From contig CP075494.1 of NCBI GenBank assembly GCA_021613535.1, forward strand, positions 6,758,001 through 6,822,000: 64,000 nt of DNA. The letters run 5' to 3'. Origin of the DNA: Adineta vaga (lineage: Eukaryota > Animalia > Rotifera). The position numbers and the translations under genes are program-made. Below the pieces are notes generated by a model. It saw only the letters and a list, made by a program, of their open reading frames with translations. It was not told the DNA's origin and did no database searches. Of this stretch, positions 29,027-38,836 are shown in pieces (position 1 is the first letter of the stretch; every line of letters starts with the position of its first letter).

Positions 29027-30445
29027 ATGTTTCGAATCATCCTTATTCTTTGTGCAAGTAAGAGAAACTACTGAAGATTTATTGATAGGATTTTTTTTCA
29101 ATATTTAGTTTTCAGCTGTATTGATTGTGTAACTGTTCGATTTAATTTGAAACAATTACCAAGATTCTATACACCCTTGAATGATAGGATCTTTTTAGCA
29201 GGTTCATTCAATCAATGGATACCGAATGATCAACGATATGAATTCAATAGTGTTACAAAAGCGTTGACAATTGATGTTCTACAAGGATCAACGATTGAAT
29301 TTAAAATAACAAGAGGAAGTTGGTCAACAGCAGAAACTTGGGCAGATGGAACAGCAAGAGCGAATAGAAAGCTAACAGTAGTATGTGTGAATTTCTATAT
29401 TTTGTTTTTTTTCGAGCAAACAGAAGAGAAAAAAAATCGAATTCATTGTTTTACTTAACGACATATTGGAATGTCGACTATAGGTTATTCTGATTTGCAA
29501 TATTTGAAGATTTTCTATAATCACTTTTCAAATATAGCTTAATGGAACCTATTTTGATATTAAATTACCATCGGAATGGTTTTGTCTTTCTTTTATCTCT
29601 TTAATCTTTAGTCAAACAATCCTCAATCGATCGACTTATCAATTGAACAATGGACGGATACAGCTGGTCGTGTTCATACTGCTACAAATCAAGTTTATAT
29701 TTTAGATTCGAATTTTTCCATGTGGAACCATCTTCCACGTACTCGTCGTATTTGGATATATCTCCCTCGAAGTTATTCAACTGATCTCAATCGACGTTAT
29801 CCAGTTGTTTATGCTCATGATGCTCAAAACTTATTCGATGCTAGTACTTCATTTTCTGGTGAATGGGGTATTGATGAAAGTTTAGATAATCTTTCACAAG
29901 AAATGATTGTCGTCGGTATTGATAATGGTGGTTCTGAACGTTTAAATGAGTTAACACCATTTCCAAATGCAAACTATGGTGGTGGTCAAGCAAATTTATA
30001 TTTAGATTTTATTGTTGATAAACTTCGTCCATATATCAATAGTCATTTTCGAACGAAATCTGAACGTGAAAATACTGCTATTCTAGGTAGTTCATTGGGT
30101 GGTTTATGTAGTTTTTATGCAGCTATTCGAAACGAAAATATCTTTGGATTAATTGGTATATTTAGTCCATCATTTTGGTTTTCGAATGATATTTATACAT
30201 ATGCCGCAAAACATACTTTTCAAAATTCTCCACCGCGGCTTTATTTCGTTGGTGGTCAACCAGAAAGTTCAACCATGATTAGTGATATGCAACGAATGAT
30301 TAATGTTTTACAAAATACAACCGTAGAATATAAACAAAATGCAAATAAATTAAAACTTATTGTTGCTGCTGATGGGCAACATCAAGAATGGTTTTGGCGA
30401 CGAGAATTTCCCAATGCTATTAAATGGCTATTTCCATTGTTCTAA
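29027..30445 (+). CDS. Secreted alpha/beta-hydrolase (putative esterase family) with N-terminal CBM20/CBM48-like domain; bacterial type
   Basis: Exons 29027-29057, 29109-29380, 29612-30445. Signal peptide MFRIILILCAIFSCIDC, IFLAGSFNQW...IEFKITRGSW, RRIWIYLP, YPVVYAHDAQNLFD, IVVGIDNG, nucleophile GSSLGG, His in GQHQEWFW. Confidence 0.93.
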
Positions 30446-32798: not shown

Positions 32799-35700
32799 AT
32801 GGCTATGGTTCTTCAAGTGAATCGTGTAACAAGCAGCAATAGCAGCACGGTTCCCATGGAGTCTTTTAATCAGCTGCATGAATCAAACAATCAAGAAGAT
32901 AGTTTTCATCGAAAAATTTCTGATAAAATCGACGAAGCAAAACAATCTCAAAATGTTGAAAAATGTCAACAAATACTTGATGATTTTTTAAAAATGCTCA
33001 AACATTTGACAACAGACGTAAATAATTATAATTTAGCATTTCGTGAAACACGCCCGTCATTCTATATGCAAGTAAGTACATTTACATATGTTTACTAAGA
33101 AATAGAACATACATTAAAAAGAAAAGTAGATCAGGTCATTGAATTCGTTGATAGTGCAAATACCTTTGATGATTTATATGTCGATAAAAAAAATGAATTT
33201 GTTTTGTCGTTTAGGAATTTCAACGTTTAACTGATCGTATTGAAACGTTAACAAAAGCACGAGATACCTTAATGGAATATCTTCATGAACTTCAAGATCA
33301 AACAGTTGAAACAACGTTCCCTTATTCAGCATCATTTAATGATGTATCTACAATGAATAGTCATTTTCAACAACAATTACAATATTCTCCCACAATATCT
33401 CATTCTCCTCGTTCATCTCCATCAGAAAAAGCTCATCATCAACATACATCATCCATTTCTTCAATACAATCGAATACAAAAGATAATTTTCATAACGAAT
33501 ATTCGGTGATAAATGATCATCATTCTGTTCAACGACCACGTAGTCCAACAATGACACCAAGTAATTTCATACGTGTTCATTTTCCAAACAAACATACTAC
33601 TGCTGTAAGCGTATCTATTTTCGAACTAATTTTAATCCAATTGATTTTCTTTATTTAGCTTGCTCCACGTACTGATGAAACACTTGAAACAGCACTTCAA
33701 TTACGTGCTTCAAGACATTCAGTTACTAATATACGTGCTTATACACCAGTTTATATGATATCAAGGTATTTAATTAGATATTTCTTTTTGTCAAAATGAA
33801 CGTAAATGTTTTGCTTTGTAGACAACCATGCCCTTGGGATATAACTCTTGATCGTTTACAAGAAACAGAAATTGAACTGGAAGAAAAACCTAAACTAGAC
33901 CATTCATTCGTAAGTATCATTTTGTGTCTTGTTTTATTGAATTAATAGATGTCAAATTTACATTATTTCTTTTTTGGGAAATCTCTTTTGTTTCGTATAG
34001 ATACGAAAAAGATTTTTCACTTTAACTTATTGTGACATTTGTCATAAAATCCTGTTACAAGGACTACGATGTCTTGTATGTGGTTCTCGTATACATACAC
34101 GATGTATACATAAATCACAGATCTGTACGATCGTTCGAAGAGATTTCTATCGGTATTTTATTTGTTGTCTGCTTTTAAATATTCATCTATGTGTAAAAGC
34201 TTTGTGTCTATATCTGTATCTATGTCAATCTAGGAAAATCTTCCAACACCTCGTTTTCGCGCATTTATGGGTGTACGTTGTGTTGTCTGTCATCATCGTA
34301 TTCGCGAAACTTATAAACGTTGTGTTTCATGTGGTAATAGTTATCATAATCAGTGTTGTGGAAAAGCACCTGTCTGTTCACATCCGATTCTTCAGTATGA
34401 TGTTCATTAGACAAAATCTTGATGATGTTTTCTATTGATCTCTTTCGTAGACATATCAAACATCTTGGTCCCGAACGTTTTAATATCGATCGAACAAATG
34501 TTCAAACACGAAATAAAGAACAATCACGTAGTTTACCACGAATTCCATTATCAGTATGAGAATGAATTTCATGCTAATGAAAGATATCATTTCATGAGTT
34601 TTTCTTTGTTTTTATTTCTAGAGACCAAGTATTACAACAAATCAAGGAGTCGGTATGTACTATGCGTTTTAATCTTTTTCATATTTTTCGTACTTCTTCT
34701 CTGTCCATATTCCATATTTGACCGTCTCTGCAGATGCGACTGCATATGCGGCGTATGTAGATCAGAAAATTCTTTTTTTTTGCTTCATTTTGACAGAAAA
34801 AAAAGAAACAAACACATTAGATTTCTAATGGTGTCTATTTGTTTTTCCTTTTCACATGCTTTCATCCCTTTTCCCTCTACAATAAATTCATTTATACCTT
34901 GACAGGTCCACAAAAGGACATTTGTCACGATTCACATGACAATACATACCCAACAGCAACAACAAATACTGGCACTTATCCAACTTCTATTCTACCGACG
35001 ATAAATATATCGTCATCACTATCATCGAATACACTTTTTCAACCGTCTGTAACACTTCTTTCATCATCATTACCATCAGCAGTATCACCTATACATCACA
35101 TTCCTCAGTTATCACTGAGTAAGATTTCAAGAGATGATTTAATTAAATACACTGATATACTTCATTGATCACCTTCTTTATGATTTTCTTCATGTTCTTC
35201 TTCTTCTTCTTCTTCTCCTTTTTCTTTTATTGATTATCACATATAACTTAATCCCTTGAACGACATCTTAAAATCGAATTCGTTTTTTAATTCTAGTAAT
35301 TAATGGTTCGACTGTAATCAGTCCAGAAAGTCTTCGACCTAGTATGATTAAACCAAATAGTGATGCTCTTATCGACGCGAAAAAAGCCTCACCTGTAAGC
35401 ACGTCATCTTCGTAGAAAAATGAAAAAATGATTGGATTCTCTTGTAGAAATATGTTAGCGAATGGCAAATTCGACCAGAAGATTTGCTCGATCATGGACG
35501 AATGGTCGGCAGAGGTACTTATGGAACTGTATATAAAGCACAAGTGAGATTACATGGTAAGAATCAATAATGAAAAATTAGATGATTATATTTATGATTT
35601 TCTATTCTTCTCTTGATAATTAGGTTATGTGGCTTTGAAAGAATTGAATTTTATTTCACCAACACCAAGTCAATTTCAAGCATTTCGTAATGAAGTTTTC

Positions 35701-36863
35701 GCATTGAAGTATGTAGTTCTATTCCATCCAATTTTACTGTGAATTAAAATTTGTATATTATTTAGAAAAATTACCCATCAAAATACCTTGAATTTCTATG
35801 GATATATTGTTTCACCTCGTTTTGCTATCGTTACACAATGGTGTGATGTAAGAATAAGAAATTTCATTGTTTGATTTTAATCGAATAAATAAATTCATTT
35901 TAAAGGGTTCAACATTATATAAACATATTCATATTCTTGATCGTCATTGGAAAATCAACCAACTAATTGATATTGCTCGACAAACCTGTCAGGGAATGTC
36001 GTAAGTATATTTTATATGATGAACGAAACAAATTTGTTTGATTTTATTCATAGATATTTACATGATCGAGGTATTATTCATCGAGATCTTAAATCAAGTA
36101 ACGTCTTTCTCGATATGTGTGCTGAACCTGATGATGTTGGTGTTTGTTGGCGTGTTCGAATTGGTGATTTCGGTTTAGCAGCCGTTAAAACTGTTTTAGC
36201 TGAAGGTGTTAATCAACAATTTCAACCTACAGGTTCCGTTCTATGGATGGTAAATTTCTTCGAATTGAAAGAACTTTCTTCATTGAAATGAATTGTTTTT
36301 TAGGCACCCGAAGTTATCCAACAAAAGGATCCAAACTGTTATTCAACTAGTTCTGATGTATATGCGTATGGTTGTGTTCTATTTGAAATGTTTAGTGGAA
36401 AATTACCTCATGCTCCAATCAATAATAAAGAACAGGTTGATTACTAAAGGAAAGAATTATAGAATAAATATATTGTTTTCTTTCTTAGATAATGTGGCTT
36501 GTGGGAAAAGGTAGACTAAAAATAAAAGTTGATCAATGTCGTGATGATACACCTGAAGCAATAACTGATTTAATTCGTCAATGTACAGAATTTGATCGTG
36601 AACAACGACCAGATTTTGCACCTGAAGTTTGTATTTCATTGACAAGTTTCTTCATAAATTAATCAATTTGTTTTCTTTCTCTCACTTAGATTGATGATGT
36701 ACTATCAAAATTTGAATTCATATTTCCACGTTTACAACGTTCGCAATCAGAGCCGTGTTTAATTCGTAATCCTCAAGATGATTTACTTGGTTTATCCATC
36801 AATTTTGGAGTACCAAAAACTCCCGTATCCGTTCATCGACGTTTTAATGCTGAAGTTTCATGA
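32799..36863 (+). CDS. RAF: Raf kinase (B-Raf-like N-terminal coiled region, RBD, C1, kinase), multi-exon
   Basis: [16 protein letters not shown]1 domain, [74 protein letters not shown], and C-terminal 14-3-3 site RSQSEP. Confidence 0.95.
34001..34152 (+). other. Raf C1 exon variant A (phase 0 to phase 2)
   Basis: AG|[42 protein letters not shown]...|GT, 152 nt. Confidence 0.9.
34234..34394 (+). other. Raf C1 exon variant B (phase 0 to phase 2)
   Basis: AG|[48 protein letters not shown]...|GT, 161 nt. Confidence 0.8.
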
Positions 36864-37974: not shown

Positions 37975-38836
37975 ATGGCAACAACTACTGAAGCAGGTGC
38001 ATCAAATAACTCAGGCAATACTGCTGAGACTACCCCATCAAAAATAATAAAGATTAAATCAAACGATGATCAAATATTTGAAATTGATCAAGGTGTAGTT
38101 GAACAATCATCAACAATTAAAACTTTATCGGACTGTTAGTAAACATTAATTTGCTATATGAAAAACAAAAAAAATTATTTTCTTATTTTGTTTTTCTAGT
38201 AATGGATGTTGGTGAGGTTCCTATTCCTTTACCCAATGTCAAAGCATCCATTCTTGGCCCAGTGAGTACTTCCTTCTAAGCTGTTCTTTTCGAATATCAA
38301 TCGTATTTTAGATTGTTGAGTTTTGTAATCATCATAAAAACGATCAAAAACCAGAACCAATCGATGAAGATGATGATGATGATCCGAATAAAGATATCTA
38401 CGAACCAAAACGGTACATATTTCTTTTGATTAAGGAAAAACAATTATCCAAGGTTATTTTTCAGTTCCGATGATATCACCGAATGGGATCAAAATTTCAT
38501 TAAACAATTTACTGTAAATGAAGGCACTCTTTTCGACATCATTATGGTACGTTCTAAAATGAATCCTGTTTCAAAATGATAATTTGCTTTTTTTTTCAGG
38601 CAGCAAATTATTTAGGCATTAAGACCTTACTTGCTGTTGGTTGCAAAACAATTGCTAATATGGTTCGTGGTAAATCATCAACTGAAGTTCGAGAAATGTT
38701 CAATATTTCTTATGATCCACCCGGTGAAGGTATCAATGCTCCTAATGCTATTGAAGGACAAGCAGGAACAGTACCAACAGCACAAGATGCTAGTGCAACT
38801 GGTCCTTCACCACAACCAGATCCTATGAATCAATAG
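37975..38836 (+). CDS. SKP1: S-phase kinase-associated protein 1 homolog (5 coding exons)
   Basis: [74 protein letters not shown]. Confidence 0.95.

Follow-up and report, generated by a model that had tools for sequence, protein, structure and literature searches.

The cysteine-rich domain (CRD) of the Raf kinases acts as a regulatory hinge, which holds the autoinhibited state of the protein, binds to the membrane and touches Ras, and mutations that are responsible for RASopathies map to it. Different isoforms are known for both BRAF and RAF1, and the cassette exons that give rise to them are located in the linker and not in the CRD. Mutually exclusive exon pairs are familiar from ion-channel and tropomyosin genes, and the exons 7a/7b of ATE1 and 4a/4b of OGDH are examples that originated in tandem exon duplication (PMC7797038, PMC7969005). 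The present work concerns a 64,000 nt stretch of the genome of the bdelloid rotifer Adineta vaga (contig CP075494.1, positions 6,758,001 to 6,822,000 of the forward strand, assembly GCA_021613535.1), the whole of which is referred to here as the window; the genome comprises 100.8 Mb in six contigs, with a G+C content of about 30%. A first-pass annotation of this DNA had proposed that the CRD of a Raf gene located in it is encoded by either of two mutually exclusive exons and had stated that no other Raf gene with interchangeable CRD exons was known to its author. Our literature search has likewise yielded no account of interchangeable CRD exons in a Raf gene, nor did it return anything relevant on mutually exclusive exons in rotifers.

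The results described below bear out this proposal. We consider it highly probable that the CRD of bdelloid Raf is encoded by two tandem homologous exons, here called A and B, that these are spliced in a mutually exclusive manner, that B specifies a diverged CRD, and that the switch between the two likely affects membrane engagement or autoinhibition of the kinase.

A Raf gene with two alternative exons for the cysteine-rich domain

The public protein model for this gene (P0026, 824 aa), which represents the B form, threads exactly onto 17 coding exons in the window that are separated by GT..AG introns, and the predicted protein is 824 aa long with exon B and 821 aa long with exon A. The best solved relatives of the whole protein are BRAF and RAF1 (E 3e-91 for BRAF in the PDB search), and its alignment with RAF1 spans residues 202 to 814, extending from the Ras-binding domain (RBD) through the end of the kinase domain. 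The protein scores 162 bits against the Pfam Pkinase profile, and the RBD matches positions 2-69 of the 69 positions in PF02196 with 21.6 bits, just below the cut-off of 25.7; a C1 domain was detected in the Pfam search as well. In an AlphaFold model of the RBD-CRD region of the A form, the RBD part has a predicted local distance difference test (pLDDT) score of about 80, and in Foldseek searches this model matched the RBD-CRD chains of BRAF/RAF1 (E 3e-7) and the BRAF RBD 3NY5 with a root-mean-square deviation of 1.8 Å over 73 residues. The last exon carries the sequence RSQSEP, a predicted 14-3-3 site of the Raf type (RSxSxP) that follows the kinase domain and is likewise found in the A. ricciae orthologues, and in the kinase tree only a long branch separates the bdelloid gene from arthropod Rafs. 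Based upon its kinase domain, RBD, RSQSEP motif and matches to BRAF and RAF1, I4U23_024048 is therefore the Raf orthologue of A. vaga. The exon-level searches reported here were carried out with single exons and the full-length comparisons with proteins from public databases, and exons were joined only for threading of P0026, for locating stop codons and for a kinase pseudo-protein of one metagenome contig (L010) in the tree. The parts of the gene that are of importance here are as follows.

32799 to 36863, forward strand: Raf-family kinase gene, A. vaga I4U23_024048, public protein P0026
33822 to 33909, forward strand: constitutive exon with the end of the Ras-binding domain, ending ...KLDHSF in phase 0; joints 33763/5>33820/2, 33909>34001 and 33909>34234
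34001 to 34152, forward strand: alternative exon A, canonical Raf CRD, minor form; 152 nt, 3n+2
34153 to 34233, forward strand: A-B intron, 81 nt, with GCTTT at 34171-34175 and 34199-34203
34234 to 34394, forward strand: alternative exon B, diverged CRD, major form; 161 nt, 3n+2
34451 to 34553, forward strand: constitutive exon downstream of the pair, into which both A and B lead in phase 2
34906 to 35118, forward strand: cassette exon, Ser/Thr-rich linker; 213 nt, in frame, alternatively skipped

The constitutive exon upstream of the pair (translation of 33823-33909: QPCPW...KLDHSF) has a ratio of nonsynonymous to synonymous substitution rates (dN/dS) of 0.06 between the window and its ohnologue. 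An AG precedes positions 34001, 34234 and 34451, and a GT follows positions 33909, 34152 and 34394. Translation of the two alternative exons confirmed what the first-pass annotation had read from this region, viz. that after DHSF each of them completes a C1 zinc-ligand pattern and ends in the same phase, and the only coordinate requiring correction was the end of the exon after the pair, which had been placed at 34556 and lies at 34553. When counted from the His of DHSF, the ligand spacing is H-x12-C-x2-C-x9-C-x2-C-x4-H-x2-C-x6-C for A and H-x17-C-x2-C-x10-C-x2-C-x4-H-x2-C-x6-C for B. As this His, the first zinc ligand, is encoded in the common upstream exon, a swap between A and B exchanges seven of the eight ligands and all of the loops; either exon would thus supply seven ligands onto a common His. 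The characterization of A as canonical and of B as highly diverged was also upheld (36.2 and 17.6 bits, respectively, against Pfam C1_1, PF00130, for which the cut-off is 26.5). Exon A matches the C1 ligand pattern H-x12-C-x2-C-x(9-14)-C-x2-C-x4-H-x2-C-x(6-7)-C exactly and is nearly identical to the BRAF CRD motif (E 6e-10 against the BRAF/RAF1 CRD in the PDB search), and judged by its sequence it is a textbook Raf CRD, i.e., an atypical C1 domain that directly follows the RBD. Since the same exons, phases and ligands are found in more than 15 distinct bdelloid loci and the four RNA junctions described next are present as well, the exon pair is far beyond what could arise by chance.

Splicing of the two exons

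The splicing of this region was examined by aligning the RNA contigs of four runs (X1, X5, X12, and X13, from four studies) to positions 33200-34700 (1,501 letters). Each of the four junctions by which the first-pass annotation had suggested that its proposal be checked was present in these contigs. The junctions into and out of exon B (33909>34234 and 34394>34451) were both seen in X1, X5, X12, and X13, and in X5 a contig of 1,511 nt follows the B form through six exons. For exon A, the junction 34152>34451 was seen in X1, X12, and X13 and the junction 33909>34001 in X1 and X13, with a contig of X12 showing the loose end CATTCATTC before 34001. Because all four joints are of the GT..AG kind, these runs contain spliced RNA. 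Among the assembled contigs of the four runs, neither a 34152>34234 joint connecting A with B nor a joint that skips both exons was found. The word depth of the isoform contigs was 25.4 for B and 5.7 for A in X1, 99.5 and 18.3 in X12, and 36.5 and 14.3 in X13, so that by this crude measure B is about 3-5 times commoner than A, and the B form is also found in the majority of the public gene models. Exon B therefore represents the major form and exon A the minor form. That the diverged exon is the commoner of the two goes beyond what the first-pass annotation had contained.

The reading frame provides a second line of evidence. It remains open with A alone or with B alone, and, in accordance with the earlier claim that inclusion of both exons or of neither shifts the frame, an mRNA containing A and B encounters a stop at 35002 and one lacking both encounters a stop at 34481. 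As each of these two stops precedes the last exon junction by more than 1 kb, both kinds of mRNAs are expected targets of nonsense-mediated decay (NMD), by which they are presumably removed. The possibility that the A+B frame has a coding function of its own was considered, as it stays open for about 130 codons in the window, and it was rejected, since stops within exon B interrupt it in 7 of the 18 distinct loci, which marks it as a by-product. The four joints in RNA, the lack of an A-to-B joint among the assembled contigs and the disruption of the frame by both or neither exon together support the mutually exclusive use of the two exons.

A further alternative event is found downstream in the linker. 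After 34652/34654, the loose ends of the RNA contigs lead either to 34906 or to 35297, and skipping of the segment 34906-35118 leaves the frame open. Pairs of public models that differ by the presence of this segment exist for A. ricciae (P0013 and P0015, 821 vs 753 aa) and for Rotaria sordida (P0027 and P0029, 811 vs 738 aa), and as far as could be seen the use of this cassette is independent of the choice between A and B. The RNA contigs also differ from the assembly at three positions. Two of the changes, G>C (33879) and A>G (34117), are synonymous and account for only part of the contig depth; the third, G>A at 34273, changes a Val to Ile in exon B and was observed in run X1 only. These differences are most likely allelic or due to strain rather than to editing.

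Control of the exon choice

The A-B intron contains an element that distinguishes it from the other introns of this gene. The pentamer GCTTT is present in one to four copies in each of the 20 distinct A-B introns that were compared, corresponding to 1.96 copies per 100 nt, as against 0.07 in the introns upstream of A, 0.00 in those downstream of B, 0.16 in the other introns of the gene and 0.09 in the whole window. This is an enrichment of about 20-fold, and the observed count was not reached in any of 2000 shuffles. Further, the last copy of GCTTT lies 26-44 nt upstream of the acceptor of B in 19 of the 20 introns. We regard the element as real, and it is probably by this conserved GCUUU sequence in the A-B intron that the choice is set, the identity of any factor binding to it being a matter of speculation. 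The UGCUUU sequence fits the UGCU/YGCY preference of Muscleblind in a pyrimidine-rich context, and in this regard the intron is similar to known Muscleblind YGCY clusters, the likeness here being one of motif. For YGCY motifs, a position rule has been described according to which those downstream of an exon activate it and those upstream repress it (PMC2853123). If this rule applies, binding of a factor within the A-B intron would promote the use of A at the expense of B.

An alternative explanation, which we regard as unlikely, is that mutual exclusivity is brought about mainly by steric hindrance in a short A-B intron or by competing RNA stems, and not by the frame and NMD. In its favour, the A-B intron is 72-109 nt long in most loci, its GCTT and AAGC copies could form a stem of 4-6 bp in about half of the introns, and in the window a perfect 10 nt inverted repeat (33978-33987 with 34138-34147) brackets exon A. 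However, ordinary introns of the Raf gene are 50-70 nt long, and the A-B intron reaches 163 nt in one locus (L011) and 248 nt in Didymodactylos; as A-B introns are longer than the ordinary ones, steric exclusion is unlikely to be the general rule, and size alone is insufficient. The inverted repeats fare no better as conserved control elements, since neither the repeat bracketing A nor a second one in the window, which connects the two acceptor regions (33991/34438), is visible in the related locus L003, and for the small GCUU/AAGC stem there is no covariation, nor does it occur in L002, L004, L006, and L014. A splicing motif held in common with a neighbouring channel gene was also considered and discarded, as the GCTTT pair of the latter (62453/62488) lies inside a coding exon and not in an intron.

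Another feature of this region is seen in the intron that follows B. In nine loci (L002, L003, L006, L015-L017, and L022-L024), which include both ohnologue types, its first 11 nt are GTATGTGTTGT, and this agreement extends beyond the normal donor consensus. The corresponding intron in the window differs and begins at 34395 with GTATGATGTTC.

The nature of exon B and its differences from exon A

The most suitable reading of exon B is that it arose by an old tandem duplication of the CRD exon and later diverged. All of its ligands are present and they are invariant in 16-17 bdelloid sequences, the first spacing being 16-17 instead of 12. When a profile constructed from 16 bdelloid B exons was used as query, the best solved relative was the RAF1 CRD (1FAQ; E 6e-4), an hhalign comparison of the B profile with the A profile gave a probability of 93% (slightly helped by five common upstream residues), and a tblastn comparison in a small database showed A and B to be 33% identical across 43 residues, with an E of about 1e-5. 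It is upon these three results, together with the position and phase that the two exons have in common, that the tandem duplication followed by divergence of B would be based, and a C1 fold and zinc binding of B are predicted only from its ligand pattern and profile similarity. An origin of exon B from KSR is disfavoured, because the profile prefers the RAF1 CRD over the KSR1 C1 domain (1KBE; E 0.89); the KSR SAM domain (PF13543) gave no match in a search of the genome, which does not prove that KSR is absent.

It could be argued that B has ceased to be a CRD and is instead a small zinc finger of another type that has acquired a new partner, whose CRD function has been lost and which perhaps yields a Raf that is less inhibited or independent of Ras. 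The single B sequence indeed finds as its best PDB match an entry with E 0.07 (0.13 for the RAF1 CRD), it fails to reach the C1_1 cut-off, its H-to-C spacing is 17 rather than 12, the hydrophobic loop is gone and AlphaFold yields no confident fold for it. Against this, the eight ligand positions and the inner spacings of B agree with those of C1 domains, its profile leads to the RAF1 CRD, the hhalign result links it to A, and it agrees exactly with A in exon position and in phase; Atlas features of B also point to C1_1 clusters, although these provide a lead only. We therefore view the loss of CRD identity as quite improbable.

Hidden Markov model (HMM) alignment places the RF of B on R143-K144 of RAF1, its HRIRExYK on Q156-F163 and its YHNxCxxKAPV on F172-T182, with K-A-P on K179-V180-P181. 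Exon A retains both of the segments of the domain that are considered below (RKRFFTLTY and KILLQGLR). Exon B retains the basic/hydrophobic N-terminal strand (RFxxF) and the C-terminal K-A-P-x-C; it has five additional residues (ENLPT) after the His of DHSF, and the charged sequence HRIRExYKR, in which I-R is nearly invariant among B exons, takes the place of the hydrophobic KxLLxGxR loop (157-KFLLNGFR-164 in RAF1). In the Raf proteins studied, a loop of the RAF1 157-164 type inserts into the membrane and, in the autoinhibited state, contacts 14-3-3 and the kinase domain, and the Ras-CRD interface consists of F172-T182 together with H139, F141, R143, and F163 (PMC8301913). In the K144A/L160A double mutant, signalling is abolished, and the RASopathy sites T241 and Q257 of BRAF (T145 and N161 of CRaf) fall within the two segments that correspond to RKRFFTLTY and KILLQGLR of exon A (PMC8301913). 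Because B replaces this membrane-inserting loop, which also makes the contacts with 14-3-3 and the kinase domain, the most likely consequence of its use would be an alteration of membrane engagement and/or autoinhibition, with the Ras-facing edge retained, rather than of kinase activity. The suggestion in the first-pass annotation that the exon choice retunes autoinhibition or membrane/GTPase specificity fits the sites at which A and B differ.

Phylogenetic distribution and conservation of the exon pair

The conservation of exon B in other rotifers, upon which the earlier proposal depended, was observed, and the tandem pair as a whole, including its phases and splice sites, is retained in the ohnologue and in other Adineta species, Rotaria-like loci, Didymodactylos and about 12 metagenome loci. 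As junctions into 34234 are present too, neither of the two outcomes that the first-pass annotation had named as refuting its proposal has occurred. The A. vaga ohnologue on contig 2 (L002; I4U23_009818) contains both exons with open frames and with AG/GT retained, its introns having diverged. A search of 1.84 billion representatives with the B profile identified B-type sequences only in rotifer-like proteins and fragments, and the named proteins containing B are from A. vaga, A. ricciae, A. steineri, five Rotaria species and Didymodactylos carnosus. In the loci from Didymodactylos (L014), from large environmental assemblies (L004-L009) and from a set of 16 metagenome contigs (L015-L030), the arrangement A-then-B was present wherever the region was covered. 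The exons fall into two length classes according to ohnologue type (152/161 nt and 155/158 nt), all of which are 3n+2 with AG/GT retained. A. vaga has no third Raf-like paralogue containing B only, the B-type exons being confined to the two ohnologues. For Rafs of monogononts or other non-bdelloid rotifers, word-indexed protein searches gave only bdelloids and distant arthropod-like Rafs. Based upon this distribution, the pair is no younger than the last ancestor common to the sampled bdelloids and precedes the split from Didymodactylos, and, as both ohnologues retain A and B, it is older than the bdelloid genome duplication.

Two intronless JGI contigs, L031 with A (ORF, i.e., open reading frame, of 724 aa) and L032 with B (ORF of 468 aa), are 97% identical on both flanks and differ exactly by the swap, and they provide independent transcript evidence from another bdelloid and from the other ohnologue type. 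Both forms have also been modelled on the same contigs in R. sordida (P0053 and P0038) and in R. socialis (P0056 and P0046), so that the A and B forms were already present, without comment, in automated public annotations, which the first-pass annotation had not foreseen. In some other public models (P0025, P0033, P0042, P0044, and P0050), the whole of A or a truncated part of it is connected to B by means of invented splice sites or read-through, and these chimeras are probably artefacts of gene prediction caused by the exon pair. The order of genes in this region is conserved as well: the PF00756 esterase upstream of Raf at 29027-30445 in the window is similarly placed in the bdelloid contigs L004-L009, and the Skp1 gene downstream of Raf (approximately 37976-38500 in the window) is also found in metagenome contig L003 (6459-7238).

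In pairwise Nei-Gojobori estimates, the median dN/dS among 16 distinct sequences of A was 0.21 and that among 17 sequences of B was 0.47, and between the window and its ohnologue the values were 0.20 and 0.51, respectively; both exons are thus under purifying selection. The amino acid identity of exon A across loci is 68-94%, and its open frame, phase and splice sites have been preserved in all genomic loci that span the region, both ohnologues and Didymodactylos included, apart from the lineage described next.

In metagenome contigs L010 (1554-1936), L012, and L013, which have a G+C content of about 37% and the exon structure of bdelloid Raf genes, a single intron of 141 nt separates the RBD exon from a B-type exon, and there is no trace of A. 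The kinase part of L010 groups with the bdelloid Rafs (support 100/100) and outside the sampled bdelloids including Didymodactylos (96/91). These contigs represent either an unsampled deep rotifer lineage that has lost A or a diverged copy. In either case a Raf gene whose CRD is of the B type only does exist, which had not been anticipated and which argues against B being a mere decoy. The converse view, that B is the only functional CRD exon and A a leftover that is spliced in as noise, could draw upon this lineage, the greater abundance of B in all four runs (it is the sole form in X5) and its use in most public models, and yet it is very improbable given that A is the better conserved of the two exons, nearly matches the BRAF CRD motif and is found in transcripts of both A. 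vaga and environmental bdelloids.

Evaluation and functional implications

A number of observations weigh against parts of the interpretation that is presented here. The RNA evidence consists of assembled contigs and not of raw reads, for which reason the absence of an A+B mRNA is not provable and the abundances are rough. A contig of low depth (4-6), which spans 34124-34263, connects A with B by way of the unspliced intron. Within 33200-34700, contig coverage of an intron was seen for the A-B intron only (depth about 2.5-5.6 in three of the runs), the neighbouring introns having none, and this suggests that its removal is specifically slow or incomplete, the unspliced species being either a slow intermediate or a retained-intron product. 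With regard to exon B, its C1_1 score is below the cut-off, its dN/dS of about 0.5 is not lower than that of the neighbouring linker exon, and the AlphaFold model of RBD-CRD(B) from 16 bdelloid sequences has a mean pLDDT of 42.8 with no confident fold; the CRD(A) part of the A-form model, at about 55, is also too low for a comparison of A with B. Lastly, only about two-thirds of the GCUUU copies fit a strict YGCY, one-third being RGCUU, many introns contain a single strict YGCY, and the element may be merely part of the branch-site region of B.

If these points are set beside the junctions, the frame and the conservation of both exons, the account of a CRD encoded by two mutually exclusive tandem exons continues to be the one that we favour. 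A more specific proposal can be put forward tentatively, and as a whole it is doubtful: that B is a neofunctionalised CRD without the hydrophobic loop that enters the membrane and faces 14-3-3 but with its Ras-facing edge intact, that bdelloid Raf is normally in this B mode, in which membrane engagement or autoinhibition would be altered and which suffices by itself in one sister lineage, and that it is switched to A, the ancestral canonical CRD, according to tissue or state through GCUUU and a Muscleblind-like factor. If this were true, the gene would constitute a natural experiment, performed at the level of splicing, on the purpose of the Raf CRD. The natural proteoforms together with the lineage possessing only B offer a comparison by which the different roles of the CRD could be separated, and the gene provides a clear case for the control of mutually exclusive splicing in a group of little-studied animals. 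In addition, the existence of the exon pair probably explains why several public gene sets for rotifers contain Raf models that are chimeric or truncated.

Comparison with known systems

The bdelloid protein exhibits the same order of RBD, CRD, Ser/Thr-rich linker, kinase domain and RSxSEP motif as the canonical Rafs (human BRAF/RAF1, Drosophila Raf and LIN-45 of C. elegans). It differs from them in that its default CRD is the diverged one, which lacks a hydrophobic loop of the 157-164 type. The atypical C1 domain (CA3) of KSR is likewise found in a Raf-related protein and behaves unlike the CRD of Raf, and its C-terminal sequence ...C-x-K-E-A-P-A-C resembles the C-x-x-K-A-P-V-C of exon B. However, B matches the RAF1 CRD far better, and it is located inside a Raf gene beside A.

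With other pairs that are derived from tandem exon duplication, the A and B exons have in common that they are adjacent and homologous, that they are of similar length and the same phase, that one of them is used per mRNA with the frame being broken otherwise, and that they have been conserved for a long time. Unlike pairs of the ATE1 and OGDH type, they swap most of a two-zinc finger whose first ligand is constitutive, and the two copies are only 33% identical over 43 aa; the bdelloid pair is further set apart by the GCUUU cluster in its intervening intron, with no conserved competing stems or distant branch points having been demonstrated. Mutually exclusive tandem exons are thus in themselves well known, and what is new is a pair of them that swaps the CRD of Raf, of which two versions have been retained within a single gene since a time preceding the divergence of the sampled bdelloid lineages.

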